A stretch of 64,000 bases of DNA from Stylophora pistillata. Its lineage: Eukaryota. Shown one piece after another: positions 318 through 44,416 of this stretch; positions within the stretch are counted from its first letter, which is position 1; each line of letters opens with the position of its first letter. Where the stretch lies: assembly GCF_002571385.2 (NCBI RefSeq), contig NW_019217889.1:260744-324743 (forward strand). Direction: 5' to 3'. The translations under genes were made by a program, and so were the position numbers. The notes under the pieces were generated by a model. The model saw only the letters and a list, made by a program, of their open reading frames with translations, was not told the DNA's origin and ran no database searches.

Positions 318-3300
318 TTTGCTGCCCCGCCAGATCGATTGATTTTATGTTTGATACCATTACACACGATCTGATTCTCCTCGCCCGTAGCCTGACATTT
401 ACCAATTCTAAACAGAAGTCGAGCGTCAAACGCTCTTTTGAGCAACTCGCAAAGTTTTCGTCCTTCATGATTACTTGGAAGGTATGCCGTGAAAAACCTC
501 TCGTGGTAAGGATGTCCTGGAGTAGGATGTTCCCATCCTGTAAAGTTAGAAACAAATGAAAATTATCAAAGAATATCAGACAAAATTGCATAGTATAAAT
601 GCCAATAAGTATTGTACATTGAAACACCTTACGAAACTTCTCCCTACCCTTCTCTACAACGGAAGTTCCAACAACCTAAACATCTGTTTTGAGAAAAAAT
701 GTCGGAAAAAACACGAGTGCACGCGAGAGCCCCGAAAGGTATCATCGATAGTTCTCAGGTCACGGTTCCTTGAACTCAGGATTTCAGAGAAACCTGAGAA
801 AACGTCACTGTATCAGAGGTAGTACTGCGGGTTTGATGAACTTATTTATTCATTTGACTTATAAAAATGTATTTATTAACGGATACCCGGATTACCTTTC
901 GATACTGTCACGCACACTTAGTTATTTTTCTGACAACCTTCTCGAAACAGGTGTATACAATCCGTTCATCCAACGTATAGGTCGTTCTGATTGATAGATC
1001 TCGTAATAAGACATGAATGATCGTCACTTAAATCGCAGAAACGTAATGATTCCACTCTAAACTTGAGTGGAAGAGATTTGATTCAAACCCACCTTGGGTT
1101 CCCGAGGGAAAGTTATAGGTAACGGCAATACTGTAATAGTCTGGATATCCAGGAAGAGGCTGTTTCTCTGTCCTCCAAGCCATGCTTCCTATTGGTTGGC
1201 TTCTTTCACAGATACACCATTGATTACTACAGATAGAACCATCAGTCGTGTTATCGATACAAGACTGGCAAAAGGTATGTCCACAATTCCGGGGTTCGAC
1301 CAGTTCTTGGTATGAGTTGCGACATATTGAACAGCGGAGTGTTGTTTGGCTTCCTTGCGACTGATCTGAAATTTTAAGGAAATTTTTAGCCCAGAAACAT
1401 AACTGTATCGACCACAAGCAAAAAAATTTTTATTCTGAAGAAATTGTGAAGAATTAAAGGGAAGACCTCAAAACTAAAGCATGAGAACAGCTGATATTTC
1501 ACATCATTGAGACATAAAGTAGGTCTAAGAGTATTGTTGACTATCGTATTATAATGGACATTGCAATGATCAACGAACATACAATCTCTATTATTTGTAC
1601 TATGGCAGCCACAATTCAACATATGATACTGATTCAAGTGACGATAAAAAAATCCTCATTTTGTAACTCTACCTTCGTCCTTCTCCACTGTGGATGCCTC
1701 ACTTGCGGATACCATTAGCTCCTTCTCTTCAGGCCCTTGACTTGTACCCGTGGCTAATAATGGCACATCATTTGGTGCTTCAGCTCTGTTTGATGCGGAT
1801 ACATTCGGAGTATTTGGTGCAGTTTCGAGCGCCATTTGCTTTTCCCTTTCTTTCTTCTCTGTCTTTGGGGCACTCGAATTTGAATGCACAGGATCACTTG
1901 CTGAGGACTCACGTTTACTGCCTTCCTTGGACTTGTCTGGCGGCTTGTTTTCGTCTTCTTTTGTTTTCTCTTTATTCGCATCAGGCTGATTCACATTGTT
2001 AACATCAGAAGCATCTGTGAATTGCTCGTTGTTTTCCGCCTCGAGTTGCTTTGCAAGATTAAGGTTATCCTTCGTCGCAGAGAGACCAGGGGGATGCTTG
2101 ATTTCACTTGTTGCTTTAAAGCTCATCGCCCTCCCAAATGAGGTACCATTTGTGTCACCTCCTTTCCGAAAAAAGCTAGGTGCAAGGATTCCTCTAGCAG
2201 GTACTGAATTTCCAGAACTCTTTGTTGTTTTGTCGGATCGTTCGCCAGTATCCTGACCTTCATCCTTGTGCTTAGTTTCATTCTTACTGCCTCCAACATT
2301 TTGGGCTTCAAGGCTGTCTGCCAAACTCATCTCGTCTGCCTTTAAGTTGCTTTCCTTAGAATTTTGCTGGTGCTGCTCTTCCACCCGTTGATGGGAGTCA
2401 TTTTCGTCCTGTTTTCTCATTGGTTCAGCAGGGCTATCCTGTGTACTCTTACACTTTTCAGTAAGTAACTCATCATCAATCCTTGGATCACCACCTCCTC
2501 GGTTAGTAGAAAATGGGCTATTTCCTTCTTCTTTAGATGGACGTCTCTGAATTTCCATTTGATTTTGCAACTTTTGTTCCGAGTAGTAACGGTTAACAAA
2601 TTCTCTTCGGAAGACCTCAGTGGTTTCTGCATCGATGATAACGACACGTATGTCACGGAGAGTACTACATTCTGCATCTATACTTGTGCTGAACTCTTCA
2701 ATCGCTCGAAAAATTGCGCCAGCACAGGCTTCTTTTGGCATACCGCAATTACCTGAGCTAATGGCTGGAAAAGCTATAGAAGAGAGTCGAAGTTGCACAG
2801 CAAGTCGGAGGCATGTTATGCATGTCAGTCGAAGAACAGTTATAGCAGCGCTTTTGTCGGGATAAGCTGACCAGTCTGGCCCAATTGTGTGGATTACATA
2901 ATGACAAGACAGATGCCCACTTAGGGTGTAAACAGCTTCACCAGGTTGCAGAGGGAATTTACGATGAGACATGATACACCGAGATTCATCTACTATTTGA
3001 CTCCCTCCTTTTATCACAATTGCACCGCCCACACCTTGAGAATGTTGAAGCCATGGGTTAGCTGGGTTGACAATGGCATGGACTTTTTCATCAGTTATGT
3101 CTCCCTGGTATAAGGATACCATTACGTTATTTGTCAACATCTGCTGTAGGATCTTAGGCAATGGCGGTTCATGATGGTGAGGCGAATGACTGATATTCCT
3201 TTGACCATTCCTAAGGTTGCCGCCGCTGAGTTTTGACAGTCCAAGTATATTTTTTAGAGCCTTTACTGAGCTCTTAAGATGAATATCCTCGCTATAGATG

Positions 3301-6300
3301 ATTAACTGACCTTCTGCTTTCTCAATCACAACGGGATGTTTGCTTTCCACGAATGCAATCGCCTCCTTGATTTTCCCGTCATCGTGGATGTCTCTTACAT
3401 CAATCACCTGTCGCTTCATGGTATGGTAGATGGTTTGGTACAAATCAATGAAAGCATCGCATCCTTCTTGATAGTGTGTTTCTTCGGCTAGAGATGTAGG
3501 TTTGATATCTACTCCAGGTTCATTTTCAGGCCAAATTATCTTTAGGTGGTACTCCCTTTCTATTTGTTCAAGCTTTTCCTTGTGTACTCTTATGAAAAAT
3601 TTCATGAATTTTGGTTCAACTTCAAAGGTGCGCTCTTCTACAATTTCCTGAGGGTCTTTTTTAACTTGCTTGAGATTTTTTGCAGAATTTTGTAGAGTTT
3701 TTATGGCATCTTTTCCTTGCACCATTCTTTCTTCCTTAAACAGCAAATGTGGACGCTGAAGAAAATATTTTTGCAAATACCTATGAGCAATTTCTAGTTG
3801 ATTGATCGTCCCAGAGAGAACAAATCCATCAAGACCCTTCACTTGCCATGATACACCAACTTCATCCTTCACCATTTTGAGCAGATTTTCTGACTTCTGA
3901 GGTGATATGGTATCGAAGCTCACAAAGGCAGTAACATGCGAGAAAACCTGTGCAGGTCAGAAATAAAAGGGGTAAGTTTCTAAAGAAACTGTGGCGCTGC
4001 GTCGGTATGTGGTATAACAAACGCTTTGTCAGAGCGACTGACGAATACCTAACTCTCGAAAAGTAAGCTTTAAAAAATCTTTGCGGTGGCCAATTTACAC
4101 TATCATGTCAGAAATAGGTTTGTCCAAATGATATAGAAAAATAACAAATGCAATAATAAAAGGGTAAACTGCGTCTAGTAGGCATTGTTCATTGTTACCA
4201 GGTAGAGCACCTAGCTCCCCTCGCTCAAGGTAGGTTTTGTAGTCACGACGCCTCACCTTCGGTTACAATTCACGCCTTTTTGTATATTGTTTTCTGTTTT
4301 CAGTTGTTCCGTGTATATTTGTTGTTTTATCAGGTTCGCCAGTCATTTTTGTCACGTCACTTTTCATATTTTTGTGTTCATTTTTTATGCATTGTTTCTA
4401 TTGTTTGGCATAGCTTCTTCTACCGTAGTTTTCTTGTCGCCGTTGTCATTATGTTTTAGTCGTCGTAGTCGCCACATAATCTTTTTAGTTTCGTTATTTT
4501 GTCCGTCATTTTGCCTGTTTTATTTATATTTCGTTTTGCTTTCCTGTTCTGTATATTTAACTTGTTTATGCACATTGGCCTTTAGCGAATCGCTAGTAAA
4601 GGTGCGAATTGCTCGGATTTGTGGATTTCGACTACAGGCTTGTCCTAAGGAAAAATTAGAGGCTGACAACAGTCTGAAGAATCATTTTGCTTTTGTTCTC
4701 TAGTTTGGAAACGTTTCAAGCTAAACAATAGGAGGGAAGAGGGCAAAGGCTATAGTGGCAAAAACTAAGTCCTAAGTAATGGACATTAATTAACTAGCTC
4801 AAGTAAAAATATTTTCGATTACTATCTTACTTGATCTTTAATCTTAATGCACGCTAAAAAGATTCATCATGCGACAATATACAATGAATAACTATACGTT
4901 TCCCCCCAAAAAACTAGGTAAATCACTCACTATGGTGTATATATATAGTGGAACCCCATTAACTCAAACTCCCAAGGGAAACAAAAAATGGTTCAACTCA
5001 ATGGTTCTAATGTATAACCAAACTATTTACCAACTAAAAGCATGTTTCCATTATTTTAATCTTTAAATTTTAGATGTAGCAAGTGCTTGGATTGACTTGG
5101 GGACTCTGTCTCTCTAAGATTACAGGGTAGAATGTTCCAGAGGGTTGCACCACTGTGACAAAAACTATTTTTGGACATACTGTAGATAGTTTGCAGGAAG
5201 GAACAATTAGTTTGTTTACAGACCCTTAGGGAAAGCACAATCACACTTAAATATTTCCATCTGAGTTGCTGAAACAAATTTTTTTGATATCAGTATCTAA
5301 ACTAGAAGACGTTAAAGTCGTGGAGCACGGTTCTGGAGATTCTGTACAGTTTTAGCAAGGCACTGATAGAGTTTTGCTACATTTACCCCAGACTAGATTT
5401 AGCCCAGACTGGAAATGAGATCGAGCAAGGACATTGTATTTGCGGAAAACTGTAAATTAAGGGACAAAAGACTTTTAGATCTTTAAATCAATTATATTTA
5501 GTGGTATACCTCTTGATTGCGGTATGGTCTAAGATCCACCTTTTTACCTCCAAACATGTGAGGGTGCTTCAATACCCCATCAGCAACTAATAAAGAAGAC
5601 AAAAATGAAGATCACATTTTAATGTATTTAATTCAATTTTTAGAACAAGAGACAGTAAAATATATATCCCAAGATACACCTTCTGTCTCCTGCTAGTTTT
5701 AACATGACTCAATATGCTAATAATAGTCTTATTTCCTCATAATGGATACATTGTCACAGTCATAAAGTTAATATATCAAGAGAAACCTATGAAATAATGT
5801 ATTTGAAATATTTGTATAAGTTTTGATCAATTGCCAGGGAAACCACAGAGGGGTGATATCTTTGATAGATGTTTCTTTTTTCTTCGGTGCAAGTTAGATA
5901 AAGCTTTTTCATGACAAATGTTCTCTTATTGTAAAATGTAAATTGTCCCGGCTTGTCTTCTGCTTTGTTGTGAAGCTGTACTAGGTCTGAACTGAAAGGA
6001 TCTTAATCCGAAATATTTACGGTATGGGCTAGGAGAGCCAAGCAAGATTGTTTACTGAATAATTTTTGTTTATTGCCAACATCAATCGAAGAGTGTCAAG
6101 CTCAGACAAAGTTTGTTTTGATATTTTGTACAACAACGCACTTACTCCTGCACGAGGACACTGATTTTGCACAGTTTTACATATGACAAGCAGACTTCAC
6201 GTTTTGCTTGCTTGCTGCCTCGCTTAGTTTGTCTAGCAAGCAATAGCATTGTAGATAATTCACGTGTATCAACTGAGTTGATAATGTAAATTGGCCGCCG

Positions 6301-8239
6301 TAACCGGAGTATGAAGGTAGATCCTGGACAAAATGTTCGTTTCGTCGTTTCGTTATGGCGTTTCGTCGTTTCGTTATGTCGAGTCGTTGTTTTTCGAGTT
6401 CGACTCGTCGAACTTCTAGTTCGTTTCGTCGTATTGTCAGTTCGATTCGTCGGCTGGCCTCTTCGACTCGTCGTTTTACGAGTCCGACTCATCATCCACC
6501 ACATCTGTTCGTCGTTTTGTCGTTTCGTCATTTCGTCATGGCGTTTCGTCGTTTCGTTATGTCGTTTCGTCGTTTCGAANNNNNNNNNNNCGAAACGACG
6601 AAACGACATAACGAAACGACGAAACGACATAACGAAACGACGAAACGCCATGACGAAATGACGAAACGACAAAACGACGAACCGATGTGGTCGATGACGA
6701 GTCGGACTCGTAAAACGACGAGTCGAAGAGGCCAGCCGACGAATCGAACTGACAATACGACGAAACGAACTGAAAGTTCGACGAGTCGAACTCGGAAAAC
6801 AACGACTCGACACAAAGAAACGACGAAACGCCATAACGAAACGACGAATCGAACATTTTGTCCAGGATCTACCTTCATACCGGAGCCTTTCTAAGCTGAC
6901 GTTTCGAGCGTTAGCCTTCGTCATTCGCTCTGATGAAGGGCTAACGCTCGAAACGTCAGCTCAGATTAACTCTTTAGAAGACTAATTTACTCAACTCAGT
7001 TAATGAAACCAAATTATCTTCTTCTACTACCCCACCGACGCAGCACCACAGTTTCTTAAGAGACTTATCCCCTAAAATTATAACATCGCAGCGCTCCTAT
7101 CAACTCTTGAGCGACGCATTTGTTATATTAGCAAGCTATTTCCGTGACACTGACAGGTTTAATTAAATACCGAACTTCTCAGGAACCGAACCCCGAAACA
7201 CCTGGAATAAAATGCATGAATAGGGTCGGCGCCTGAGACAATCAACAACTGTTGCTTCAATAAAGAACGGCGTATCCGTTTTCTCGCCTGGCGTGCCCTG
7301 AAAGTATAGCTCGACTGTGGAGCGGATCGAAATGGCATTTATTCGGGCGCCGAAATTTGCAAGTGCCGAACCACAATGTGTATATCATAATAACATTTTT
7401 GCTAAAGGTTTCCTCAAAACGTAGTGGGGACGGTTAGAAACGGTCGGCGTCTGAGTCAATAGACGTTTTTTGCACTAGTTCGCTCACTCCGTGTTAGAAT
7501 TTAAAGTTCGGCTGCCGAGTAATTCGAAGTCTGAGTTTTAACAAACCAAAATTCTTCGTGAGTTCATCGATTGCGATCTCTTTTTCGCTCCAGATGTCTC
7601 CCATGACCTCAAAATGTCATTAATTTTATTTTTAAACAGTGTACACTAGCTCCCAACTCATTCGAAAGCCTCCGCATTTACTTTTCAAAACGTACGTTTC
7701 GCTGTGGGTTAACACAGCCTCAGGTTCCAGATGCCAACGGATCTGTTTCTTTATTCTTTCGAATTGAAGCGGATGCCACAACAACAATACGTAAAGCTGT
7801 ACAAGAGTTTAGATAAAAAAAGTCTCTGAAAAGATTTTTCCTTGGTCAATCTCACGTAAAATCTCCTCAAGTCAAGTTTGAAAGGTTCGTAGTAAACAAG
7901 GAGCGAACAAGATGAAGCCGGAAGTTGTTTGACTGATCTCTTGTAGATTTCACTTTTCCGCTGACTGAGACACATAAGAGACCAAATATATGAGCACATT
8001 TTAAATTTTACCTTACCTTCAGGGCTTTCAAAGACAATGACTGCTTTTCCATCCTTTGTCATCCAAATATCATCGACTTCTCCCCCGCCGTTTTTACTTT
8101 TCTGGAAATGTATGTGAATTTCATCTTTTGTAATTTGTCTCGGTATGTTCGATATCACCACAGCTCTAGCAAACTTTTCGACACTCAAACGTCCTAGCTG
8201 TGATTCTATTGACTCTGGATGGTCATTCATCTCTGCCAT
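318..8239 (-). CDS. Gene A: DTX3L-like E3 ligase with internal macrodomain (RRM-KH-like-Macro-charged linker-RING-DTC); last exon lies left of the window
   Basis: Exons: 8239-8017 (Kozak accaccATGG; RRM-like HFQKSKNGGGEV), 5586-5510 (VADGVLKHPHMFGGKKVDLRPYRNQE), 3947-1673 (KH-like region; macro QGDITDEKVHAIVNPAN...AFPAISSG), 1365-1093 (RING CSIC..CGHTFCQSC; start of DTC LPGYPDY..YNFPSGTQG), 537-318 ([23 protein letters not shown]). All junctions are GT-AG with matching phases 1,0,1,1,2. Confidence 0.88.
6310..6879. mobile_element. Palindromic non-autonomous TIR element (TATGAAGG...CCTTCATA) built of GTTTCGTC-type subrepeats, with a 6-bp flanking duplication CCGGAG
   Basis: The two arms are near-perfect reverse complements around the N gap at 6580-6590. 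CCGGAG occurs at 6304-6309 and 6880-6885. Confidence 0.75.
6893..6961. repeat. Short hairpin repeat containing a hammerhead-like core (Penelope-type terminal repeat family)
   Basis: agctgacgtttcgagcgttagcc...ggctaacgctcgaaacgtcagct is an inverted repeat. CTGATGA is at 6930-6936 and GAAACGTC at 6950-6957. A degenerate relative lies near 3990-4070. Confidence 0.55.
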
Positions 8240-8701
8240 GGTGGTAAAGGCAATAAATGCGAGCACTATACTGCTCCCGTAGCTAAATTTCGCAACACAG
8301 AGTTCGGTGTTGTTCGTATCTCGTGGAAATAGAAAGAGTGGGACTAGCACCGAAATCACCAAGCCGAGGCATGAAGCCCACGGGGCAGGAAGCACTGCCG
8401 AAGTGTTTTGGGGCAAACCAAAGTTCTTGTTGAAACAGGCTGATTGTGGACTTTTTCGCTCTTGTCTGATCTGTGAAGTATTATTATTTTATTGCACCTC
8501 TCATCTAAAACCAGGTTGCTTAGGGTCGAAACGATTTCAAGGTACTTTATTTAGATGATTGAAAGGATTTTTCCGGGAATTCAGTCTGGAGATTCCCGGA
8601 ATATCTACTTCCGCTTACTAATTAGGTTTCAGTTTGAGAGCGAGCCCTCAAATATTTTGATGTGTTGTGCTGCGTGGAAGACAATTTGGTAGGCTTTGAG
8701 G
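8240..8701. promoter_or_regulatory. Bidirectional promoter between genes A and B with two GAS (STAT) sites and IRF/ISRE-like motifs
   Basis: ATGs at 8239(-) and 8702(+). TTCCGGGAA at 8571-8579 and TTCCCGGAA at 8593-8601. GAAATAGAAA at 8326-8335. GGTTTCAGTTT at 8625-8635. ETS-like ACTTCCG near 8607-8613. Confidence 0.7.
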
Positions 8702-22263
<13,562 letters not shown>

Positions 22264-22474
22264 ATTTATAATTAAGGTGTTTTATTTCGTTCGTTATATT
22301 TCCATTTTTCCTTCTTTTGCATGAATTTTTTTCTAGTCCAACCGTTTTGTTTTAGAAATATTTGAAGTCCTGGGTACGATACTTGGAATCACATGATGGC
22401 GAGTCAACTTCCTCTTTTTAAAATCGTTTAGGTGCTGTCGCTCTCTTTATTATGCTTTTCATGATCAGGAAGTT

Positions 22475-23681
22475 ATAACGCAAGCTAAGGTTTTTTCGAT
22501 AACGTGAAAAAGGAAATTGAATGCCCAGTATGCTAGGAGCAATTTAGCGTAAACAAGCAACCAAAGATTCTGGAATGTCTTCATACCTTTTGCAAATCTT
22601 GCCGTACAGTAACGGAATGTCTCAACACTGATATCGATAATCTTCCGTCGAACCTGTTTTACAAACAAATAGTGGAAATTGTGGAGGCATACGCAGGTCA
22701 AGAAGAGTCATCATGTTGCGGGAAATGCGAAGAACAGAAATCGCTGAGGTTTTATTTCTCCACTGAATTGCAACTGTTTACTGTGCGAAGAATGCGCTGC
22801 AGTGCACAAGAAGTGGAAGGATTTCAGAGGCCATCAGCTCAAGGAAATGGGAAAACGTCACTCTCGTAATGTAGAGGACTACTCTCGAAGAGCAAACGTC
22901 TGCAAAGAGCACGAGGACAAAATTAGATTTTACTGCGAAGCATGTCGAATTTGCATTTGTCGTGACTGCGCCATACTGGATCACGACGACCACAAGAAAA
23001 TTTCGATAGAGAAAGGACTAGAAAGTAAGGCAACTGAAATCAAGAATAAGATATGAGAGGTTCAGGAAAACGGATCTGTCTTGAGAAACAAAAAGGAATC
23101 TCTGGAGAAACGTAGAATGTACGAATGGTTGCACAACAATAGATAACATTCAGCAGTTTGGATTTTGGCGAGGAAATTCTCTCTCGTAGGAATCTACCAG
23201 AAATAATAAATGTCGAAGAAATGTTGGAGAACAGGCTATAGGAACTATCCGTGCCTTTTGAGCCTTCACTGAATTTCCCTGAAGTTGTGTACAATTCAAA
23301 TGATTTCAGTTGCTTGAGAGACGGACCTGGAAAGCTGATAAGGACATTTACAGAACCTACGGCATCTGTTGCAGAAGGTCAAAGTTTGACTGAGGCTATC
23401 CAAGGAGAAGAGAGCACATTTACTGTGATTACTGAAAAGATATCAAGGGCCAAATTGTTTATGGCGAAATCGATCATGTCAATGATGCGATGATTTCCGT
23501 CAATGCAAGAGGGACTTTGATAGCCAGCGTCACAGACTCAAAGAATGGCCGATATCAAGTAGAGTACACAAGTGAGACGACAGGTGACTTTAAAATATCT
23601 GTTACAGTACAAGGTGAAGCCATCAAGGACAGTCCGTTTACTTTAAGGGTGAGAAAGACAGAACCAGAGACATTTTATCAG
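22475..23681 (+). pseudogene. TRIM (RING/B-box/coiled-coil/filamin) pseudogene, paralog of the exon at 28411
   Basis: The start codon is ATA instead of ATG. Deletions in the RING and coiled coil, frameshifts and stops split it into ORFs 22672, 22802, 23251 and 23490. It keeps the same TTTTATCAG|GTATC donor. Confidence 0.9.
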
Positions 23682-24169
23682 GTATCATTTTTTATGTTCT
23701 GTAAACTTTCAGGCTGTTGTAATTGAAAGAACGGAGTCTACTTGAATATGATAATTTGATAAAACCCAAATTATCATATTTTGGTTTGAGTTAATGTTGT
23801 TAAACCCAAACCAAAGTAAGCACAACGGCCCGACACAGTAAAGGAACAGCGCGTGGAACTAATCAGTTCTTGAAGTAAAAAACAAGCAAATTATCCCAGG
23901 AGCAGGAAACGTGACAGACCAAATTACTTAGCACAACTTTTCTAAACCAATCATAGAGAGAGAATAAGAAACACTGATACAATTCTGAGTTACCATCGAT
24001 ACATAAGTGAAAATGGTATGATTATTAACATTTTAAATCAAATTAATATTTAGACTCAAACTAAAGTTGCATTTGGTGCTTCAAACAATTCTGAGGATTG
24101 ATTTGTTTCTATATGAAACACACAATATATGTCCAAACTAGCAGAGGGAAAAAAATCCATATTTCATAC

Positions 24170-24499
24170 CATTTTTGTTTTGGAAAAGACAAAAACCCGT
24201 TTCATTTATTTGTTGGCATTTGCTTCCCGGGATCCCTAGGAATAGTCGCTTTTCATTGCTTCCTTTCAACTCATCCATTTTTTTCTTTCGCATAGCATAT
24301 GTCCTGTAGAGAGATGGATTTTGAACTCTTGCAATTCTCAAGATCATAATTTTGCTGTGACATGTTTTTTGAGCATGATTCTGAACTTCTTGGTATTCCT
24401 TTGCATTGTTCACAGGATCTAGCTCAACAAGATGAACGGTAAGTTCTCCACCCCATCGGTTTTTCGGCTGAGGGATCCAGTTGCTTGGCAAAATAACAT
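24170..24499 (-). pseudogene. Exon encoding the N-terminal part of a PARP (ART) catalytic domain, PARP14/PARP12-like; catalytic His position changed (LFLGI instead of LFHGT)
   Basis: Translation D-VILPSNWIPQ...EYQEV...IARVQNPSLYRTY...NEKRLFLGI...INETGF. Phase-1 acceptor tttag|AT and donor G|GTATG. No downstream PARP exon was found. Confidence 0.8.
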
Positions 24500-25070
24500 C
24501 TAAACAGGAATTATTAAAACATTGTTTAGACTTTTCATATTGTAACCAAATTGTGGTATACACGCTCGAGGTTTGGAGTACGTTTCATTGATATAAAAAC
24601 TTTCATTCATTGCAGAGGTAGTGAACCACAACAAGCTAAAATTAATATGTCAGTTGGTCCTCTTTGCCATGACGAGACTACGAGGAGCCCATATAATCTG
24701 TTTGTGTAGCCGATTGTTATTTTAGAGTGAATGTACCAGATTTACTGTTTGCCTCACCAACAGTGATATATTGCTGATTATGTATATATAGCCTGCGTCG
24801 CAGACAGTCTAAAGCTTTACTTAAACTGCATGTCAAAAAAACAAATGGATTTCTCACTTAAATCAAAGCTTTACTTAAACTGCATGTCAAAAAAACAAAT
24901 AGATTTCTCCCTTAAATGAGAAATAAAAATCATTCATCTGTATTTTTAGCAGGTCCCTACACAAGGCCATGCGCGTGTAACGCAAGGAACTGCTGCTAGG
25001 GTTTAAACCCTTGGAGTTGACTTGGCAAATTCTCTAAAGTGTATTGGGCCAACTGAAATTATATTCTTAC

Positions 25071-25965
25071 CATGAAATTTGCTGAAAACTGGCTTCGGTT
25101 TTGGGGCTACAACCAACTGAAAGGGACTTCCATTTATTGTATCGTCCCTTTATTTTGATTGATATCTTGAAGTCTCCAACAGCTCTTGGCGTGTAAGATA
25201 CACAATAACGGCCATCTTTTAAGTCCTTTACAAGAGCTGGAATATTTTTGGTTCCCTGTTGTACGGATGTGATCTCCACCGTGACGTTGTCAATTTCACT
25301 GTAGGTTGTTTTGCCGCCTGAATCCTTCGTTGTGACCGTAAAGTAGCTTACCTCTCCTTGAATACTTTCAGTTAGTCCTTGTCCTGTTCCAACAGAAAAG
25401 TAAGGCTCTGTAAAGGTTACATGTAGCACACCAAGACGGAAATCTGGAGGCAGCGTATTTATCTAATACTTGAACTCTGGATATCTTAGTAGTGGCGTAG
25501 AATTCTGAAACCTTTGCGCAACAGTTCCATGAAGCTGATGTTTTACGTCTAACATTTTCCTTACGTCATTTGTTTGTAAAACTTCTCTACCATGTCTTGT
25601 GCTCTTGTACATTAGTCGGAGCTTTTCGACGAGCTTCGACAACTCATATTTTATGGCCTCGTCGTAAAGCGACTTTTCTTTTGCCAACTTTTCTGTCATC
25701 ATTTCTTCCTGTTGACGAAGAACATTTTTAATACCTTCCGTCACGCTATGAACTTCTGCCGCCACTTTATCGATGCTATTATTGTATTTCGCTTTTCTTT
25801 CACTTAAAGACTCAAAATGGTTCCTCAGAAGCAAAGAATTCTCCTAAATATCTCTCAAGCTACTTTGGATAATCCCTCTCTGCTTCTTTGCTCCATCTTC
25901 AAGCGACATGATGTTGTGATCTATCGGATCTCGATGTTCCGTAATGGCGAATGCAGATCCAACAG
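25071..25965 (-). pseudogene. TRIM remnant (partial B-box, coiled coil, filamin), paralog of the exon at 54185
   Basis: Motifs EHRDPIDHNIMSLEDGAK and GQGLTESIQGEVSYFTVTTKD..KDGRYCVSY. In-frame stop at 25463 and a +1 frameshift near 25148. It ends AAATTTCATG|GTAAG like the 54-kb TRIM. Confidence 0.85.
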
Positions 25966-26257
25966 CGACCCAACAGCGACTGCAGGAAATAAAAAGTTAC
26001 TCTGGAAGGCACAAATTTGAATCCCATTTATAGCTTCCATACTATAATTTATTGAATTGCAGCTCATCTGCGAGGATCAAAGCTTTACTTAAACTGCATG
26101 TCAAAAAAACAAAAGTATGTTGACATGTGAGAACTTTTGGTTGATTGGTCTCAGTAAATTGTTCCTGGCAGAGGGAGCACTCCAATTCTTTCTTGATAGC
26201 ATCATAAAGAATGTTCTCACAGAACAGGCCGTATTGCTCTTTAATTCAAATAATCAA

Positions 26258-26592: not shown

Positions 26593-27029
26593 NNNNNNNN
26601 NNNNNNNNNNNNNNNNNNNNNNNNNNNNNNNNNNNNNNNNNNNNNNNNNNNNNNNNNNNNNNNNNNNNNNNNNNNNNNNNNNNNNNNNNNNNNNNNNNNN
26701 NNNNNNNNNNNNNNNNNNNNNNNNNNNNNNNNNNNNNNNNNNNNNNNNNNNNNNNNNNNNNNNNNNNNNNNNNNNNNNNNNNNNNNNNNNNNNNNNNNNN
26801 NNNNNNNNNNNNNNNNNNNNNNNNNNNNNNNNNNNNNNNNNNNNNNNNNNNNNNNNNNNNNNNNNNNNNNNNNNNNNNNNNNNNNNNNNNNNNNNNNNNN
26901 NNNNNNNNNNNNNNNNNNNNNNNNNNNNNNNNNNNNNNNNNNNNNNNNNNNNNNNNNNNNNNNNNNNNNNNNNNNNNNNNNNNNNNNNNNNNNNNNNNNN
27001 NNNNNNNNNNNNNNNNNNNNNNNNNNNNN

Positions 27030-28410: not shown

Positions 28411-29817
28411 ATGGCGCAAAGTAAAAGCTTCTTCGATGATGTGAAAAAGGAAGTAGAATGCCCAGTGTGTCAGGAACAGTTTGGCGAAAACAAGGAACCG
28501 AAAATACTCAAATGTTTTCATACGTTCTGTAAATCATGTCTGGAAGGTTGGCTTCGACAACAACGCAAGGAAGCTTTGAGTTGCCCGACTTGCCGAACAA
28601 AAACTGAGTGCCCTAACAATGATATCGACAGTCTTCCGTCGAACCTGTTTTACAAACAAATGGTGGAAATTGTGGAGGCATACACTGGTCAAGAAGAATC
28701 ATCATGTTGCGGGAAATGCGACGAACAAAAATCGCTGAAGTTTTACTGCTCTAATTGCAACTGTTTACTGTGCGAAGAATGCGCTGCATTACACAAGAAA
28801 TGGAAAGACTTCAGAGGCCATCAACTTAAGGAAATCGGAAAACTTCAGTCTCGTGATGTAGATGACTACTCTCGGAAAGCAAACGTTTGCAAGGAACACG
28901 ACGACGAATTTAGATTTTTCTGTTTAGCATGTCGAATTTGCATTTGTCGTGATTGCGCCATATTGGATCACGACGACCACAAGAAAATTTCACTCGAGAA
29001 AGGACTAGAAAATAAGACAACTGAAATTAAGAATAGGATACAAGAGGTTCAGTCGAACGGATCTCACTTGAGAAACAAAAAGGAATCGTTGGAGAAACGT
29101 AGATCCAAAGTAATCGACAGCTTTGAGCGAGCAACGAACAGTGTACGCGTAATTGCAGAACAATGGATCACATTCATTCGTAAGCATGAAACAGACATCA
29201 CAGAAAAGTTAATGAAGCAGAAAGAGGCATTTAAAGCTGAATTTTCAAACCAGATGTCGAGCTTGGATGATAGACTGGTGGACATCGACAGCAGCCTGCA
29301 ATTTGGCGAGGAAATTCTTTCTCGTAAGAATCTACCAGAAATATTAAACGTCGAAGAAATGTTGGAGAACAGACTGCAGGAACTATCCGTGCCTTTTGAA
29401 CCTACACTGGATTTCCCTGAAGTTATGTACAGTTCAAATGATTTCAGTTGCTTGAAAGACGGACCTGGAAAGCTGATAAGGACAGTTTCGGAACCTATGG
29501 TATCTGTTGTGGAAGGTCAAGGTTTGACTGAGGCCATCCAAGGAGAAGAGAGCACATTTACTGTGATTACAAAAGATATCGAGGGCCAAATAGTTTATAG
29601 CGAAATCGATCAGGTCAATGTTGAAATAACTTCTATCAATAAAAAAGGGACTTTGATAGCCAGCGTGACAGACTCAAAGAATGGCCGATATCAGGTAAAG
29701 TACAGAAGTGAGACAACAGGTGACTTCAAAATATCCGTTACTGTCCGTGGTGAAGCCATCAAGGACAGTCCGTTCACTTTAAGAGTGAGAAAGAGAGAAC
29801 CACAGGCATTTTATCAG
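28411..29817 (+). CDS. Intact TRIM exon (TRIM2/3/45/71-like RBCC plus filamin), 469 codons
   Basis: [21 protein letters not shown]; B-box1 CGKC..CSNC..CEEC..H..H; B-box2 CKEH..CLAC..CRDC..H..H; filamin [17 protein letters not shown]...DSPF; donor CAG|GTATCG. Confidence 0.93.
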
Positions 29818-32800
29818 GTATCGTTTTTCATGTTCCTTAAACTTCCAAGCAGTTTCAATTGAAAGAACGTAATCTACATGAATATGAGCTTGATATATTT
29901 GTTGAAAAGTCACCACCGCTGATGTAATTCTCGCTGGATCCCTGAACTTCCCCATGATTTCTTCACTGAATTCACTTTACGCTTTAAAGTTGTATTTCAT
30001 TAGAAACTGGCTACACTAAGAAAATCGATTCACTTTCGCGGATAAACCTTCAAAACAACTATGATTGACTCTTTTAGTGGAACAGGTATTGGACAGATGA
30101 GGGTGACGATAATTCTGATAATGATGATCCGTTGGAACACAAACTGGGTAAGTGCAGCATTTATGCATCTCTTTGTATCTGCAAATGCGTGTTAGATAAA
30201 CACAAGCTTGAGACTTCAAAGACTGAGCAGCAGGACGAACTTAATATTACTTTGAGCCAACGTTCACATACAGGCTTCCCTAAAATTGTTTTAAGTAGAT
30301 CACAGTGTGTTAACGCACTCAGGGGAGCTAGCTATTGCTACTAACGTAAGTAGAGTACATAAAATCTTAATTTCCACATTTACTTCACGGGATGTTTAAA
30401 GGTGAAAGTACAGGTTGACAGCTTAGTAAGTATCACCTTTATAAGAACTTGTTCGCAACAAAGTTAAGGAGGAGACTGACATCGAGTTCCACGATACAAG
30501 TGAAGGGTTTTTACTTTCAGGGAGTTTCCAACAAGTAAAACAGAGTCGAGATCTGTTCAGCCACTACTTAAGAAATGTGGTTCAGAATTTAGATTTGAGA
30601 CCGTAAATTTCCGATGAGTCAGAGAAGAAAAGGAGATCAGCGAAGCATCCAGAGAAATTTTCAAGTCCTACATCAAATGAGACTGGTCACTTGGAAAATG
30701 AGAAGGAAGCAGGCGCTGTAAAAGGCTCAGGTAACGAAAATAACTTTGAAGAGGAAGAATCTTCAAATTTGGAACCTCAACAGTACGAAACGACGAAGAG
30801 GTTTTTCCCTTTGTTCGTCAGAGCCCATGGCGAAGACTTACAGAGAATCGAAAAGGATTTTAGAGTAAAAGTGCATAGAGAAGCCGTTGATAACAAAGTC
30901 ATCGTGGCACCAACCGGACGCTGCACTGTTAAAGAATTTGATGAGGGATGCGATGCTTTCATTACTCTTTATCAAGATGTTCATAAGCGCATGAAGCTCG
31001 AACAATTTATTCCGAGAGACGAGGAAACACCAACACGTGTGAGGCAACGTATCAGGGACATAGGCAAGACACACCCCGTCTTGGTTGAAAAATGCGAGGA
31101 CCGCAAACACTGGAAAGTCTACGGCGAAGATTGTTTGGTGGATAAATTTCTCAGCGATCTCCTCACCGAGCGTCTGATTATAATCATACTGCACCGGAGC
31201 CTGAGGGTTGGAACGGGGATTGGACAGGTGAGGGTGACGACGATTCTGATGGTGGTGATTCGTTGGAACACAAACTTGGTAAGTGCAGAATTGATGCGTC
31301 TTGTTAAAAGACAAAATTGGCATTTAGCAAGAATTTTTATGAAGTGTGTTTTTAAACTTATTTAAGTGTTAAGAACATAAAAGGAAATACTATAAGCCAT
31401 TCAGTACAGAAATTATAACTAAGCAAAGTTGATCCTTTCCATTCGTTTTGGCGGTCATAACTTTCAGGTAGAATTTCTGTCAACTTTTTCTCATTGTGGT
31501 CGTTAATTTAGACTTGAAAGCAGATGTTCAGTTTCTACGGTAATTACAACTTGTGATAGAATATTTTGGTTATCTCGCAGTAAGCTATATTTCAATTATT
31601 TTGATCTGTTTGATAAAGAAGAGAGTAAATCGCTCTGGTAAAAGTTAGACTCGTAGAGGAATTCCAGGAAATTTCTACTTGTTATACTTTCTACTATTTT
31701 CAGGCTCGTTTTTAGATTAAATTCTATGTCAAATTCACGATCAAGGAAATATTTCTTAAATTTTAATTTGACACCTCTTTCTTTAAGGTGACCGTAAGGG
31801 GGCGGTACTTGTGTACACTCCTTCTTCCTCGAATCCTCTGTTTATTCTGTTGTTATGTAACAAAGTTCAAGGACTGTTTTCGTTTTAGTTATCTTTTTAA
31901 GTGCAATTCTAATCCACGCAACGGTTTCTTTATATTTTTTTTTAATATTGCCAATCTTGTTTTTGTTTTACCGGAACTAATTAAAACTGGAAATGTAAGA
32001 AATTTAAGGTAGAAAACGATTTTGTAACTGCGTAAACAACTCGAAAGTACATACTTAGTATACAGGGACTGTTTAACGTAACTTAGCATGATTCGCTAGT
32101 TAAGATAAAAACAATGATGATGCATGAAGATTGACAGCTTAATAAGTATCACCTTTATAAGCTGGTGAACAACATTTTCACTCAGAGCTGAGCTAGTCCC
32201 GATAGTAGTAAGTTGTATTAAGAGATCAAAGCAAGGAATAAAGAAGTATCAACTGTACAGGAGTGTTAGAAAAGCTTCTAGCAATCTCTTATATCTGCGA
32301 AATGCGTGTTTGATAGATGTACATTCGTTGTTAATCAACGTTGTCCGTATAATTTCCTGACAAGAAGAAAATACCTAGGAATTATTTAGCTGTACTCTCT
32401 TTAGTTGACCATGAATATGATTCTCATTTATCCTTAAATGTCTTGAAAAACTAAAGTCACTTTTTACACAGGCCTATAAGACTTAAAGGCTGAAGAACAA
32501 GACGAACGTGGAATTATTTTGAGCTAACATCCACATGCACGTTTCCCTGAAAACTGCTTACTGTAGATGGTCTATAAATGCATTGTGCTGATTTTTACCT
32601 CCAACTTAGTTAAGTATAATACAAAATCCTTATTTCCACAATTCAGGGCTCAAAGTTAGCGACCAGCTGGTCGCACATGCAACTAGATTTTTAATTGTGC
32701 GCCTAAAAATTCATGTGTGAACGCACTTGCGCGCCTATAAATCCCAGAAATTAGTGCGACTGAGCTTATCACCACTCAACTCTGTTTTCTCACCTGATCA

Positions 32801-35800
32801 TTCTAAAATGACTCCGACTGGTTGGACACGAAACGGAATATTAAATTAATAAGTTCAATCGTAGGTATGACATAATCAGGCTGCAAACAATAAAGTTATC
32901 ATTTTCCTTGCACCAGTGTGTGTTTTACTCGTCTTTTTCTGCCGTGGGTTCTCCGAACTCGGTGCTCCATATTCCTATTCCATCCCAGCCCTGTTCGGTT
33001 TTGCGAATACTCCGCTGACGCATGCGAGTCAAGGCTACCTTTAAAGCACGTGCTTCTCGGCAATCAAGTTCACCGGTCGATGTGAAAGGTCAAGCCAGAG
33101 GCAAGAATGTCTAAACAACCTGGTTTAAAAGAATTTTTTTCTTCACGGTGAGAACAATTTAAATAAAACGATGAATAATAAATTGTTTTATTGTATTGTA
33201 TCGTACGTCTTAGTTAAGTCAATGGCAATCAATGTTATTCTCTTACGAAACGCTCATTTGCATAACTATAGTTTGTTATTCAACAGCCGGCCGGCGCCTT
33301 CTTCTTCAGCTTCGAACTCGAAAGCTTCATCAGTGTCCAGCTCCATTGATAGAGCCATGTTTATTGCAGGGATTGTTATTTGAACCGTAGCGATCAGAGA
33401 CCAAGGCGTCCCAACTTTGCTTACAGAAGGTGGCCAGATGAACTAATTTCAGTTGCTGACTCGTGGGACTCACCGGATTTCGAATGATCGAGTTAATGTT
33501 GTATTAATCACTTTGTTCTACGTCCAAGTCTGTTTCAGCTTTAAACTAAAAGTATATTCATTGGAAATCAAATGAAAGTTGTGAGCAGTAAACTGACAGT
33601 GTATATTTTCTTAGTTATTCACGTTCATTTCAAAGGAAATGAATACGGAATTTTTCTGTTACCTTGAATGTACCGGGACCATGAAGTGCAATACTTCTTG
33701 AGATCGAGAAGGTTAATTAAAAAAAAAAACGTAACAGTATTATTGTTATCTCCAATGTAGAGTAATAGCCTGGAGGTAGGAACAAACACAGATTCATTTA
33801 AAATAAAAGACAACATACCGTTAAATTATTACTTATACAACGTCTGAAGCTTTCTTTTTTTTTTGGGTTTCACCACTATTTTAGGCTGAGTTCCTAAAAT
33901 TTTTCGCTGTTCACCTAGAATTTTAGCAGTGCGTCTAAAAATTTACACCTGGTAGTGCAAGTGCTTCCAAAACCAAAATTAAACTTTGAGCCCTCCTCAT
34001 TTGTTTCACGGGATGTTTAAATATGGAAAGTACATGGGAAAAACTGGATAGTATAAACATCGAAGTAATATAACTAATAAGATACGGCCTTTATATTTAT
34101 AATCAGCTCGTTTTATTGTACAGGTTCAGTGAAGCTTTCTGTTGTGAAGGGTGACATCACGGATCAACAAGTTGATGCGATAGTGAATGCAGCCAATGCC
34201 AGACTGGATCATGGTGCAGGAGTCGCTGGTGCAATTATCAAGAAAGGGGGCCATGGTATACAGAAAGAGTCGGATCACTACATCCATCAACACGGCCGCC
34301 TGAAGGATGGAGAGGTAGCCACCACTGGGGCTGGTAAGTTGCCATGTAAAAGAATCATCCATGCAGTTGGTCCCATTTGGCGGAAAGCAGAACAAGAAAA
34401 ATGTAAAAATGCTTTGAGAATGGCTTGTCTTGAAAGTCTTGCAGCTGCAAGCGGAAAAAAGTATAAGTCAATTGCCTTTCCAGCGATCAGCTCAGGAATC
34501 TATGGCATGCCGAAAGATGTCTGTGCAAAAGTTATGTTTGATGCCGTGAAAGAATACCTTACGAAAAGAGATCCATCGACGTTGACTTTGATCGATATAA
34601 GATTTGTGAATATCGATGATGCAACAGTGAAAGTTTTTAAGAGAGAATTCATGGAGTTCTTCCAAATCCAAAAAGATAACCTTCTGGCAGGTGGTCCGAA
34701 GACATCCAACCCATCGAGACCAAAAAGGGATAAAAAGAAAGAAACAAGTGGAATGAATGATGTGAATGATCCGCTATCGCCGGATATCACCTCATTAGAT
34801 ATTTTCTTCCGCGATGTATTGAAAAGAAAAAGACGTGATGGCGAAAGGGGGCCCTCAGCATCGTCAGAAGGTAATTTCATTTTTCATGACGGCGAAAATT
34901 ATCGTAAATTATGACTGTTAACCCTTTCTATCAATTAGTTGTATGCAGCTAATAAACAAAATATTTTAGGTGTGCAACTGGATGACTGAACAAAAAAATA
35001 TTGAAGCTGTTCGTCTAAATTTGGAAAAAATACCTTTCATGTAAATTTACTCTTTGGAGTAATAAAAGCGTTCCGGGTACAGAGACTTGAATTGGTTATC
35101 AATCCCTTTTTATCTCCTTTGTTGCTTATGTCGTAATAATTTCCTAGAAGGAATTATGATCATGAATTTAGGTATATCTGATTCACATTACTTATATCAT
35201 GGATTTGCTTCTGTAGGAGCTCGTAAGGATGACCAATGCGCCATTTGTCTCGATACCGTGAAAAATGCTCGATCTTTAAAGTGTAAGCACGTCTTCTGCA
35301 CTAGTTGTGTGGAAACTGTTTTAGAGTACGACAACAGGTGTCCAATTTGTAAGGAACCTCAAGGTGCTGTTCAAGGAAATCAGCCCAATGGAGAAATGCA
35401 GGTTCAGAAACTTCGTCAGAGTCTGCCAGGCTATAAAGGTAATAAAGTTACAGAATACCTATAAATAACTTATAACTCAAAATACTAAGTATCGGAATAA
35501 CTATTGATGCAATAGGGATATTTTGTGACGTATTTTAACTTTAAATAGTTTAAGATCCCCTCGTTGTAACTGCGCTCCTGGTCGAACGCAACCAGGAGCC
35601 CATTACCCTGACTCAACCATACCAAATAAAAAATCAATCGATTTGATAATCAATCCTTCGCACCTTCGCAATCTCTTTTATTGCAGCTCAGCTGAGATTT
35701 ATCAATCGACAGTGGTTAAGTTGCGCCTTGTGGACCCGCAACAAATTTTGACAGCTGTGATGGCGAGTATCGTTGTTGATTAGAGTACAGACCACGCTAA

Positions 35801-36773
35801 CCACGGTCGATTATTTTTTTTACACGATATTGACGTCAAATAAAACGATTCTTTCAATGCGTGACACGATGCGTAACAAATTGACATGAGCAGGGTTGTC
35901 TGTACTCTTATCGACAACGGCAAATTGGCCAATCAGATTGCGTCATTTCCGCTAACTGTGGTCAAAGATTTTCTTAACTTGTAAGAATATAAATTAATGC
36001 TTTGATTAATTTACAAAAACTTCACCTGCTCCTGAGGTTTTATACTAGCTTTCTCTATAAATTTGACTTTATCATCCACAATTAGGGCTATAAAATTATT
36101 CTGAATCGCATTATGGTAAAGCAAACGCTGGCAGTAATTTTCTGGGTATAATTTACATGCAGGCTTCGGTACAATCCTCATCACCTATTACTTTCCACCC
36201 GGAACACAAGGCCCAGAGCATCCAAACCCTGGCCAAAGCTACTTTGGAACCAGTCGCTCTGCGTACCTACCCGATAACCAAGAGGGGAGGGAGGTGTTAG
36301 CCCTTTTGAAGAGAGCCTTTGATGCTCGGTTGGTTTTCACTGTGGGTACAACAATAACATCTGGGTTGTCAAATCAGATTACGTGGAACACTATTCACCA
36401 CAAGACCAATACTCATGGAGGTCCTCAAGGGTGAGTGAGTGTTAAGTAGTATTATCTAGAGACCAAGAAGATATTCTTGACCTTCCGAAACTGATACTTC
36501 AGAATCGAAGGTGCTGTAAAGATTTGAATTTCCAAGCTTAACTTTTGTGATTGCGACACAGATTATTTCAAACATCCTCTAGCGGTATGTTTACCGTTGT
36601 TGCAGCGTTTTTGTCATGTGGTTTAACGGCTTTAATACGAAGCCGGATAACAGCGAAATGCAAACTACAAATATTATCGCTATGGCTGTAATTATCATTA
36701 CAGGTACGGTTATCCCGACCCAGACTATCTTCGACGAGTCAAAGAAGACTTGGCAGCCAAAGGAATCCGCTAA
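28411..36773 (+). CDS. Gene C: predicted TRIM-Macro-Deltex chimera (RING-Bbox1-Bbox2-coiled coil-filamin-Macro-RING-DTC), 927 aa
   Basis: Exons 28411-29817, 30078-30147, 34124-34870, 35217-35438, 36163-36430 and 36704-36773 total 2784 nt and are open throughout. Phases are 0,1,1,1,2 and all junctions are GT-AG. Confidence 0.65.
30457..31278 (+). pseudogene. Decayed KH-like exon (paralog of gene B exon 3) inside the gene C intron
   Basis: The 5' end and acceptor are missing. In-frame TAA at 30604-30606. The frame shifts before the LEHKL G|GT donor at 31278. Confidence 0.85.
32644..33995. mobile_element. Non-autonomous DNA transposon, hAT-like termini CAGGGCTCAAAGTT...AACTTTGAGCCCT
   Basis: TIRs are visible. 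The paralogous empty site (tttccacatttacttcacgggatgtttaaa) is present near 30371-30400. Confidence 0.6.
34124..36773 (+). CDS. Intact Macro, RING and DTC exons of gene C
   Basis: Macro [23 protein letters not shown]; [21 protein letters not shown]; [22 protein letters not shown]; [22 protein letters not shown]. Confidence 0.92.
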
Positions 36774-37714
36774 TCTACTGGATCGCTGACTCCCGTCAGG
36801 AGTTGAAATTCGTAACAATCATGAGACACAACTTTTCGTAGTTTCTTTATTAAGCCGGAGGGTTCTCTCTTCGTCTTCTCAAATTTGAACTATTCAATAG
36901 GTACATTGTAGGGATAGCTAAGGTGTACACAATGGCAAAAAAGATCCTTTATTCATACGTAGGTAGTCTGTTAAGACTAAGGCGCACGAGCACCTCCAGA
37001 ACTGACTGGCAGAGACCGTATTGCTAGAATAAACTTGGCGTGCGATAAAAACCGGGTTTAGTTTAATGTAGTTTGAGTGTAGTGTGTCGTAAATTTTGAT
37101 GGCTTTCTCTTTTTAGATTTCTGGTAAAGTTTCTTAGCTTGTGGAGGGAATAGCTTGTTTGTACTCCCAGTTTACTGTTTAGGGATTATGTAAGCAGCAA
37201 CCGAAAAAAATCGCTAAAACAATAATAAAGAAGGCAACCTTTTTAAAGAGCCCCTGAGACGAAAATGGACCATTTTATTTTGGCCTAACTTGTTTACACA
37301 ATGTTGAATTGGGTCAAGTTAAGACCCTTTTTGCCATTAAAAACTCAAAACAAACCTTCGATGACCAATTTTTACCGCTTCAAAGTCGTCCAAAAATCGT
37401 CCGCCATTGCTGNNNNNNNNNNNNNNNNNNNNNNNNNNNNNNNNNNNNNNNNNNNNNNNNNNNNNNNNNNNNNNNNNNNNNNNNNNNNNNNNNNNNNNNN
37501 NNNNNNNNNNNNNNNNNNNNNNNNNNNNNNNNNNNNNNNNNNNNNNNNNNNNNNNNNNNNNNNNNNNNNNNNNNNNNNNNNNNNNNNNNNNNNNNNNNNN
37601 NNNNNNNNNNNNNNNNNNNNNNNNNNNNNNNNNNNNNNNNNNNNNNNNNNNNNNNNNNNNNNNNNNNNNNNNNNNNNNNNNNNNNNNNNNNNNNNNNNNN
37701 NNNNNNNNNNNNNN

Positions 37715-44416
<6,702 letters not shown>

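Follow-up and report, generated by a model that had tools for sequence, protein, structure and literature searches.

A 64,000-nucleotide (nt) stretch of the genome of the coral Stylophora pistillata (RefSeq contig NW_019217889.1), hereafter the window, holds a tandem array in which TRIM45-like genes alternate with DTX3L-like genes. One TRIM gene of this array is followed, 0.6 kb downstream, by a DTX3L-like copy (gene C) that has neither the RRM exons nor the first part of the KH exon (TRIM and gene C together, 28411–36773, forward strand). We propose, with modest confidence, that transcripts of this TRIM gene are spliced onto exons of the macro-RING-Deltex gene next to it and encode a fused long protein.

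In the proposed scheme, the TRIM gene and the DTX3L-like copy would act as one transcription unit. Transcripts of the TRIM gene would leave their open reading frame (ORF) at 29817 and enter a 70-nt exon derived from a duplicated KH tail, after which two routes would be available: unspliced run-on to a stop at 30344, or an in-frame splice to a cryptic acceptor at 30521, followed by the ordinary KH>macro>RING>DTC splices. On the reference haplotype, the second route would end at the TAA at 30604, after 520 amino acids (aa), whereas in the RNA-sampled colonies, without this stop and without the frameshift beyond it, the same route would encode an 1179-aa protein in which a TRIM scaffold for dimerisation is followed by a KH-like region, a macrodomain of PARP9/PARP14 type and another RING coupled to a DTC domain. 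The substrate end of such a protein would read or trim ADP-ribose, and its second, Deltex-type RING could ubiquitylate ADP-ribose. The initial annotation of this stretch, made from the sequence alone, had proposed a TRIM-macro-Deltex chimera; it was right in kind, with relatives in other corals, but wrong in its second splice.

The family of chimeras is real and the observation is not a chance artefact; at the S. pistillata locus, the chimera is polymorphic or leaky. Each junction was observed, as were the reading frames, the alleles, the constraint on the exons and the relatives in other species. The RNA evidence came from four studies and consisted of two contig sets (X1 and X4) and two raw-read runs (X21 and X24); these labels are distinct from the names of the RefSeq isoforms X1 and X2. 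Positions are those of the window, exon phases and totals were checked exon by exon, and the exons were searched singly against Pfam, PDB and protein databases.

The TRIM exon, its donor and the bridge exon

The TRIM exon (28411–29817, forward strand; 469 codons) encodes a RING finger, two B-boxes, a helical region and a filamin repeat and ends, as initially annotated, at the phase-0 donor CAG/GTATCG. Pfam searches of the ORF 28411–29862 identified the RING (zf-RING_2, 1.3e-11, residues 16–62), with a complete set of C3HC4 zinc ligands in the translation, two B-box matches in two stretches after the RING (zf-B_box, 2.2e-10) and the filamin repeat (2.2e-16); the helical or leucine-zipper-type matches over residues 181–363 were weak for a coiled coil (E 0.004 and worse). 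The nearest solved structures were those of TRIM2/3 for the RING and TRIM3/45/71 for the filamin repeat. The translated exon matches residues 1–469 of XP_022787727.1 and XP_022787725.1 with 100% identity, both being named 'tripartite motif-containing protein 45-like' in RefSeq, and its ratio of nonsynonymous to synonymous substitution rates (dN/dS) against the Pocillopora ortholog was 0.19.

The donor at 29817 lies 15 codons ahead of the ORF's own stop (TGA, 29860–29862), which closes the unspliced continuation of the TRIM frame (29818–29862). In X1, X4 and X21, and in both RefSeq isoforms, this donor was joined to 30078 (GT..AG), as had been predicted. The X24 reads, which were limited to the TRIM end, ran unspliced across 29850–30049. 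Stranded reads of X21 showed plus-strand RNA over the TRIM, KH, macro and RING exons, and all stranded reads were in the + sense. Both RefSeq isoforms and the RNA exit the ORF at 29817 and continue, and so do not show a TRIM45-type ending after the filamin repeat. The locus shares with TRIM45 and TRIM2/3/71 the RING, the two B-boxes, the helical region and the single filamin repeat, but differs from them in that its transcripts run past the filamin repeat into Deltex-type exons and in that NHL repeats are absent.

The X1 and X4 contigs also contained a loose end before 29836. This sequence matches one end of a dispersed repeat flanked by TTAA, of which the genome has at least 11 copies, all ending in the same way and followed by CTTAA; the unspliced continuation of the TRIM ORF holds a TTAA at 29837–29840. 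In other haplotypes, a transposon that the reference lacks has inserted into the first intron, 20 nt past the TRIM donor, and the loose end was rejected as an exon on the basis of this match.

The bridge exon (30078–30147, forward strand; 70 nt) lies between the acceptor ttttag and the donor GTAAGT, is open, and leads from phase 0 to phase 1 as initially described. It is a duplicate of the tail of the KH exon, read in the ancestral frame: together with 23 nt of the following intron (30078–30170), it corresponds to the KH exon tail at 31209–31301 with 86% identity in a self-BLAST comparison. When the bridge donor is unused, the stretch 30148–30344 is retained and read to a stop at 30342–30344, which is the structure of RefSeq isoform X1 (XP_022787725.1, 557 aa; TRIM, bridge and retained stretch). 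RNA contigs running unspliced past the bridge were contiguous over 30076–30454 and 30100–30485, and contigs from other colonies spanned 29450–29815 plus 30076–30454. When the donor is used, the bridge is joined to an acceptor between 30520 and 30521, inside the KH exon; this joint, which keeps the frame (G/GG), was found in one X1 contig (depth 10.5) and forms RefSeq isoform X2 (XP_022787727.1, 520 aa), in which TRIM and bridge are followed by the KH exon from 30521 to the reference TAA. The splice from the bridge straight to the macro exon (30147>34124), on which the initial annotation depended, was found neither in the four RNA runs nor in the RefSeq isoforms; the bridge donor goes to 30521 or is unused.

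The KH-like, macro, RING and DTC exons

The KH-like exon of the DTX3L-like gene is truncated at its 5' side (30446–31278, forward strand), contains the internal acceptor at 30521 and is followed by the donor GTAAGT after 31278. As assembled, it carries one TAA (30604–30606) and one 2-nt frameshift (at about 31179) in 276 codons. In RNA from three runs belonging to three studies, every covering contig or read has a C at 30605, changing TAA to TCA, and every covering contig or read leaves out 2 nt at 31179, restoring the frame. No RNA contig with the stop or the frameshift was found, even where the TRIM-linked path was abundant. With the letters read from RNA, the chain amounts to 2784 + 756 = 3540 nt, is open, and encodes 1179 aa plus stop in the order TRIM-KH-macro-RING-DTC.

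In RNA, the macro exon is joined mainly to the KH exon: the 31278>34124 joint was strong in X1 (depth 55) and X4 (depth 143) and was present in two X21 reads. Its dN/dS was 0.20 and 0.36 against paralog D and 0.49 against Pocillopora. The KH exon has been as constrained as the other exons, and its two lesions must be either recent or private to the reference. The initial annotation had called this exon dead, which agrees with the stop and the frameshift in the assembly but not with an exon that is open in RNA, spliced to the macro exon and constrained. The KH label itself is weak: 30607–31176 had no match to Pfam KH_DTX3L and the paralog exon scored below the cut-off (E 0.022); a related long protein (P0138) matched this family at 3e-9.

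A second form of the KH exon was seen in one X4 contig (95 nt) and five X21 reads, with other sequence before 30444. The sequence before 30444 was found neither in the window nor in the whole assembly (up to 3 mismatches). In DNA as in protein, it aligns collinearly with two uninterrupted KH exons, one in gene B and the other in a contig assigned to Pocillopora. The sequence before 30444 is therefore the 5' portion of an intact KH exon, belonging to a full-length copy or allele missing from the assembly; a search of the assembly for a second C-type macro-RING-DTC copy found none above 77%. Given the collinearity, the loose end was rejected as a spliced leader and as a further, hidden exon upstream. 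On the genomic side, the stretch abutting the start of the truncated exon (30412–30445, forward strand) is a copy of the intron piece 32128–32161, with 94% identity over 34 nt, and has the look of a junction left by an old rearrangement or tandem duplication; it is exactly here that the RNA of the second form departs from the window.

The macro exon (34124–34870, forward strand) runs from phase 1 to phase 1 and matches Pfam Macro at 1.9e-36, over 118 of the 118 positions of the family. Its closest relatives of solved structure are the first macrodomains of PARP14 and PARP9 (3vfq, 2.8e-49; 9qyd, 4e-39). In the alignment, the N-A-A-N and G-I-Y-G loops are kept and the glycine-rich loop reads G-A-G-V, at the level of sequence. 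The PARP14/PARP9-type macrodomain 1 binds and can hydrolyse mono-ADP-ribose, and macrodomain 1 of S. pistillata PARP14 is active (PMC10221186). A protein search with the macro exon returned only genomic ORFs of Pocillopora-like scaffolds.

The second RING exon (35217–35438, forward strand) encodes a complete C3HC4 RING (Pfam, 1e-12; residues 49–89 of the ORF 35087–35464) and the first DTC residues (96–120 of the same ORF). The DTC exon (36163–36430, forward strand) matches the Deltex C-terminal family in Pfam (4.9e-16) and has the conserved stretch W-N-x-I-H-H-K-T that belongs to this family. All 88 of its residues align with DTX3L (3pg6, 1.7e-31) and DTX2 (6y22, 2.7e-26). Ubiquitylation of ADP-ribose mediated by the DTC domain has been described (PMC10810221). 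The last coding exon (36704–36773, forward strand) contains the end of the DTC domain and the stop; it has 95% protein identity to the last exon of the paralogs, and the same C-terminus is found in Oculina, Desmophyllum and Pocillopora proteins. The 34870>35217 joint was present in RNA, and eight X21 reads joined 35438 to 36163. The macro, RING and DTC exons are thus intact, as initially described, being open in the required phases, matched in Pfam and joined in RNA. They were also found to be under the purifying selection that had been predicted (dN/dS 0.2–0.35): against paralog D (dS of about 0.9), the ratio was 0.25 for macro, 0.21 for RING and 0.19 for DTC, and against Pocillopora it was 0.34, 0.17 and 0.20, respectively. 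No RRM exon or other 5' exon of the macro-RING-DTC gene was found upstream in the window, in agreement with the stated absence of the RRM exons.

In its exact form, the initial model joined six exons through 30147>34124 and skipped the KH exon as dead. Its arithmetic is sound, since the six exons sum to 2784 nt and encode 927 aa plus stop, open and in phase throughout, and on the reference haplotype this chain is the only way of attaching macro-RING-DTC to the TRIM exon. A RefSeq model of Pocillopora verrucosa, moreover, joins a KH tail straight to a macro exon. However, the four RNA runs contain the strong 31278>34124 joint and no 30147>34124, RefSeq built isoforms X1 and X2 and none of the predicted kind, and the KH exon is transcribed with an open frame and evolves under constraint. 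We therefore regard the six-exon protein as improbable.

Related proteins, and one fused gene or two

The link between the TRIM donor and Deltex-type exons was also found outside S. pistillata. A 118-kb contig, which we assigned to Pocillopora from sequence similarity, carries a standard C-type gene (RRM exon, full KH, macro, RING and DTC) beside gene A, then a TRIM gene and, after it, part of a KH exon cut short, the tail of a KH exon, and macro, RING and DTC, which is the order of the window; in this contig, two ORFs share the macro exon between them. In P. verrucosa, a RefSeq 'TRIM45' of 851 aa uses the same donor position and continues into a KH tail, a shortened macro domain, a RING that has lost cysteines, and DTC. 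The link from TRIM donor to Deltex exons is thus common to Stylophora and Pocillopora, with a downstream copy that is not always intact.

Further fusions are predicted in other corals. They include TRIM45-like proteins of Oculina patagonica (TRIM-RING-DTC, 723 aa) and Montipora capricornis (TRIM-KH-RING-DTC and TRIM-macro), an unnamed product of Porites evermanni (RING-B-box-coiled coil-macro-RING-DTC) and OS493_005113 of Desmophyllum pertusum (coiled coil-filamin-macro-RING-DTC). S. pistillata itself has a second locus (C153:129546-133343), a compact TRIM-filamin-RING-DTC gene with short introns, represented in RefSeq as TRIM71-like isoform X2 (714 aa). In the mollusc Haliotis rufescens, LOC124119043 (XP_048249660.1, 1053 aa) has the order RING-B-box-macro-RING-DTC, as in the coral chimeras, and is 34% identical to the Porites protein. 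Two environmental contigs encode TRIM-type and macro domains within single ORFs, one of 918 aa (full TRIM, filamin and KH) and the other of 913 aa (B-boxes); the merging of gene models cannot yield uninterrupted ORFs of this kind. Among the 150 best representatives, macro-RING-DTC proteins without TRIM were common. The initial annotation knew of no described protein with this architecture: we likewise found no paper on TRIM-macro-Deltex proteins in the literature searched, but the databases do hold predicted TRIM45-like and TRIM71-like chimeras. As a separate observation, a copy of the TRIM exon of the second S. pistillata locus, with 91% identity, lies just past the end of the window (C106:328433-329603).

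The predicted coral and mollusc chimeras share with the studied locus the C-terminal motif and a full or partial set of the domains RING, B-box, coiled coil, filamin, KH, Macro, RING and DTC, arranged in the same sequence. They are mostly compact and hard-wired, whereas the studied locus depends on a bridge exon and a cryptic acceptor, with competing intron retention and a stop in the reference. It also resembles conjoined or read-through genes of arrays, in which a near-terminal donor joins downstream exons and several isoforms arise, some with premature stops. However, unlike in conjoined genes, both joins at this locus are in frame, the donor position is common with Pocillopora and the domain fusion is fixed in other corals.

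We infer that all of the junctions lie on one mRNA and that the protein is made, and several observations weigh against this reading. No single read or contig joins the TRIM exon to the macro exon, the junctions lying 4 kb apart, a distance over which short reads and unitig contigs are unable to phase them. Judged by contig depth, the TRIM-linked share of KH RNA was about 30–40% in X1 (16 of about 50) and X4 (57 of 143), and less in X21; about 60% or more of the KH-macro RNA has the other 5' end, that of an ordinary full KH exon (depth 143 against 57 TRIM-linked in X4, and five reads against at most one in X21). Divergence from the window is 2.9% for the main KH contig, compared with 1.1–1.6% in the TRIM-specific parts, and for this reason the KH contig for the most part, and the open letters in part, may come from the other copy or allele. 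The 30147>30521 joint was seen in the one contig of depth 10.5 and in RefSeq, and X4 showed only the unspliced form. The reference chain closes at 520 or 557 aa, with no macro-RING-DTC attached in that haplotype, and the TRIM-linked copy of Pocillopora looks decayed, with its split macro exon and lost RING cysteines.

An alternative is that of two functionally separate genes, which we consider possible but doubtful. The TRIM gene would then have short tails only (483, 520 and 557 aa), and macro-RING-DTC would be expressed only from the ordinary, complete DTX3L-like gene (with RRM, full KH, macro, RING and DTC), collapsed in or missing from the assembly. The TRIM-KH junctions would be read-through noise and the TRIM-linked copy would be on its way to becoming a pseudogene. 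Besides the predominance of KH RNA with another 5' end, collinear with the contiguous KH exons of gene B and Pocillopora, and the greater distance of the KH contig from the window, this explanation would account for the stop and frameshift of the reference copy, for the bridge donor being unused in the X4 contigs and one X1 contig, with X24 unspliced past 29850, and for the split macro exon and degenerate RING in Pocillopora. It does not sit well with the sole C-type macro-RING-DTC copy in the assembly being intact and constrained (dN/dS of about 0.2–0.3), nor with a TRIM-linked path that makes up about 30–40% of KH depth in X1 and X4, where no contig has the stop or frameshift. The reuse of the donor position in the Pocillopora RefSeq model, the frame-keeping nature of both splices and the hard-wired fusions of the same domains in other corals also argue for the fused gene. 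The initial annotation had named as contrary to it transcripts that end after the TRIM exon or splice elsewhere, with the macro-RING-DTC exons spliced to other 5' exons; in our data the bridge does splice elsewhere, to 30521, and most KH-macro RNA has another 5' end, but the TRIM exon does not simply end.

In vertebrates, PARP9-DTX3L and PARP14 couple the reading and erasing of ADP-ribose with ADP-ribose ubiquitylation in antiviral signalling. Corals appear to have a macrodomain and a Deltex ligase in one chain, and in several lineages this chain appears behind a TRIM scaffold. Judged from its domains, the fused product would act as an ADP-ribose-directed two-RING ligase, probably in innate immunity. 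It resembles human DTX3L-PARP9 in that its DTC domain is nearest to that of DTX3L (3pg6), its macrodomain nearest to those of PARP14 and PARP9, its RING is directly followed by DTC, and a KH-like region lies upstream. However, the human complex is a heterodimer, whereas the coral macrodomain is in the RING-DTC chain, which has no PARP catalytic domain; in addition, an RBCC-filamin TRIM module can be spliced in front of the coral chain, and the coral KH label is weak. If the fused protein is made, it would be a natural construct with which to ask how a dimeric TRIM platform positions a DTC-type ligase on ADP-ribosylated targets, and whether its two RINGs divide labour.

The locus shows how such a fusion can arise stepwise within a tandem array, through a duplicated exon tail serving as bridge exon, a near-terminal donor that is conserved, and a cryptic acceptor lying within coding sequence. 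It also suggests that open and truncated alleles may coexist. Only tentatively would we go further and suggest that TRIM-KH-macro-RING-DTC might form a class of two-RING E3 ligases that is old and conserved in stony corals and has a counterpart in a mollusc, in which a scaffold of dimeric TRIM type is combined with the equivalent of PARP9-DTX3L in one chain, and that open (1179 aa) and truncated (520 aa) alleles might be segregating here, as for an immune gene under fluctuating selection.

The tandem array and its assembly

Around the studied locus, the array comprises gene A (about 330–8416, reverse strand), gene B (8696–19590; RRM, KH, macro, RING and DTC), a broken TRIM copy downstream of gene B (22188–23751), a TRIM fossil (about 25145–26209, reverse strand), gene D (37715–41743) and another TRIM (54176–55459), besides further fragments. 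Gene B with its flank (15558–22602) and gene D with its flank (37715–44754) are 99.7% identical over 7 kb, with 17 mismatches and 2 gaps, and the latter copy starts right after an N gap (37413–37714), in the middle of the KH exon. Either the segment was duplicated very recently, or one scaffold has been pieced together from two haplotypes and, given the high identity and the start after the gap, the scaffold may therefore be mosaic in places. At 15844–15900, the KH exon of gene B has a frame-shifting indel with respect to gene D (ORFs 15626–15901 and 15684–16373, against 37309–38526), and one of these near-identical copies may be broken or mis-assembled.

The position of the TRIM gene next to the truncated KH-macro-RING-DTC copy could, in principle, result from wrong joining when short reads of a repeated array were scaffolded, given the N gaps on either side (26593–27029 and 37413–37714), the near-identical 7-kb pair, and the absence from the whole assembly of a 5' KH part that is seen in RNA. 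We consider this very improbable, since RNA contigs from other colonies span 29450–29815 plus 30076–30454 and 30100–30485, the RefSeq models have the same junctions, and the order TRIM, truncated KH, macro recurs in Pocillopora.

The broken TRIM copy at 22188–23751 is 76–88% identical in DNA to the studied TRIM, has lost internal segments and contains no long ORF; some Pocillopora scaffolds carry an intact counterpart. On the minus strand, 24138–26209 contains a RING fragment, a coiled coil and filamin, with 36% identity to the studied TRIM. These pieces are followed by an ORF resembling the start of a PARP catalytic region; the initial annotation read the whole as a fossil TRIM-PARP fusion, of which the TRIM part was checked here. 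The intron between the second RING and DTC exons of gene C contains, at about 35720–35980, a short repeat found dispersed through the genome in more than 40 copies (75–83% identity), some of them in inverted pairs. Finally, two near-identical fragments of a KH exon lie in tandem at 49234–49747 and 50287–50800, 1053 nt apart, with identical ORFs of 116 aa and 126 aa, and flank a single N at 50230.

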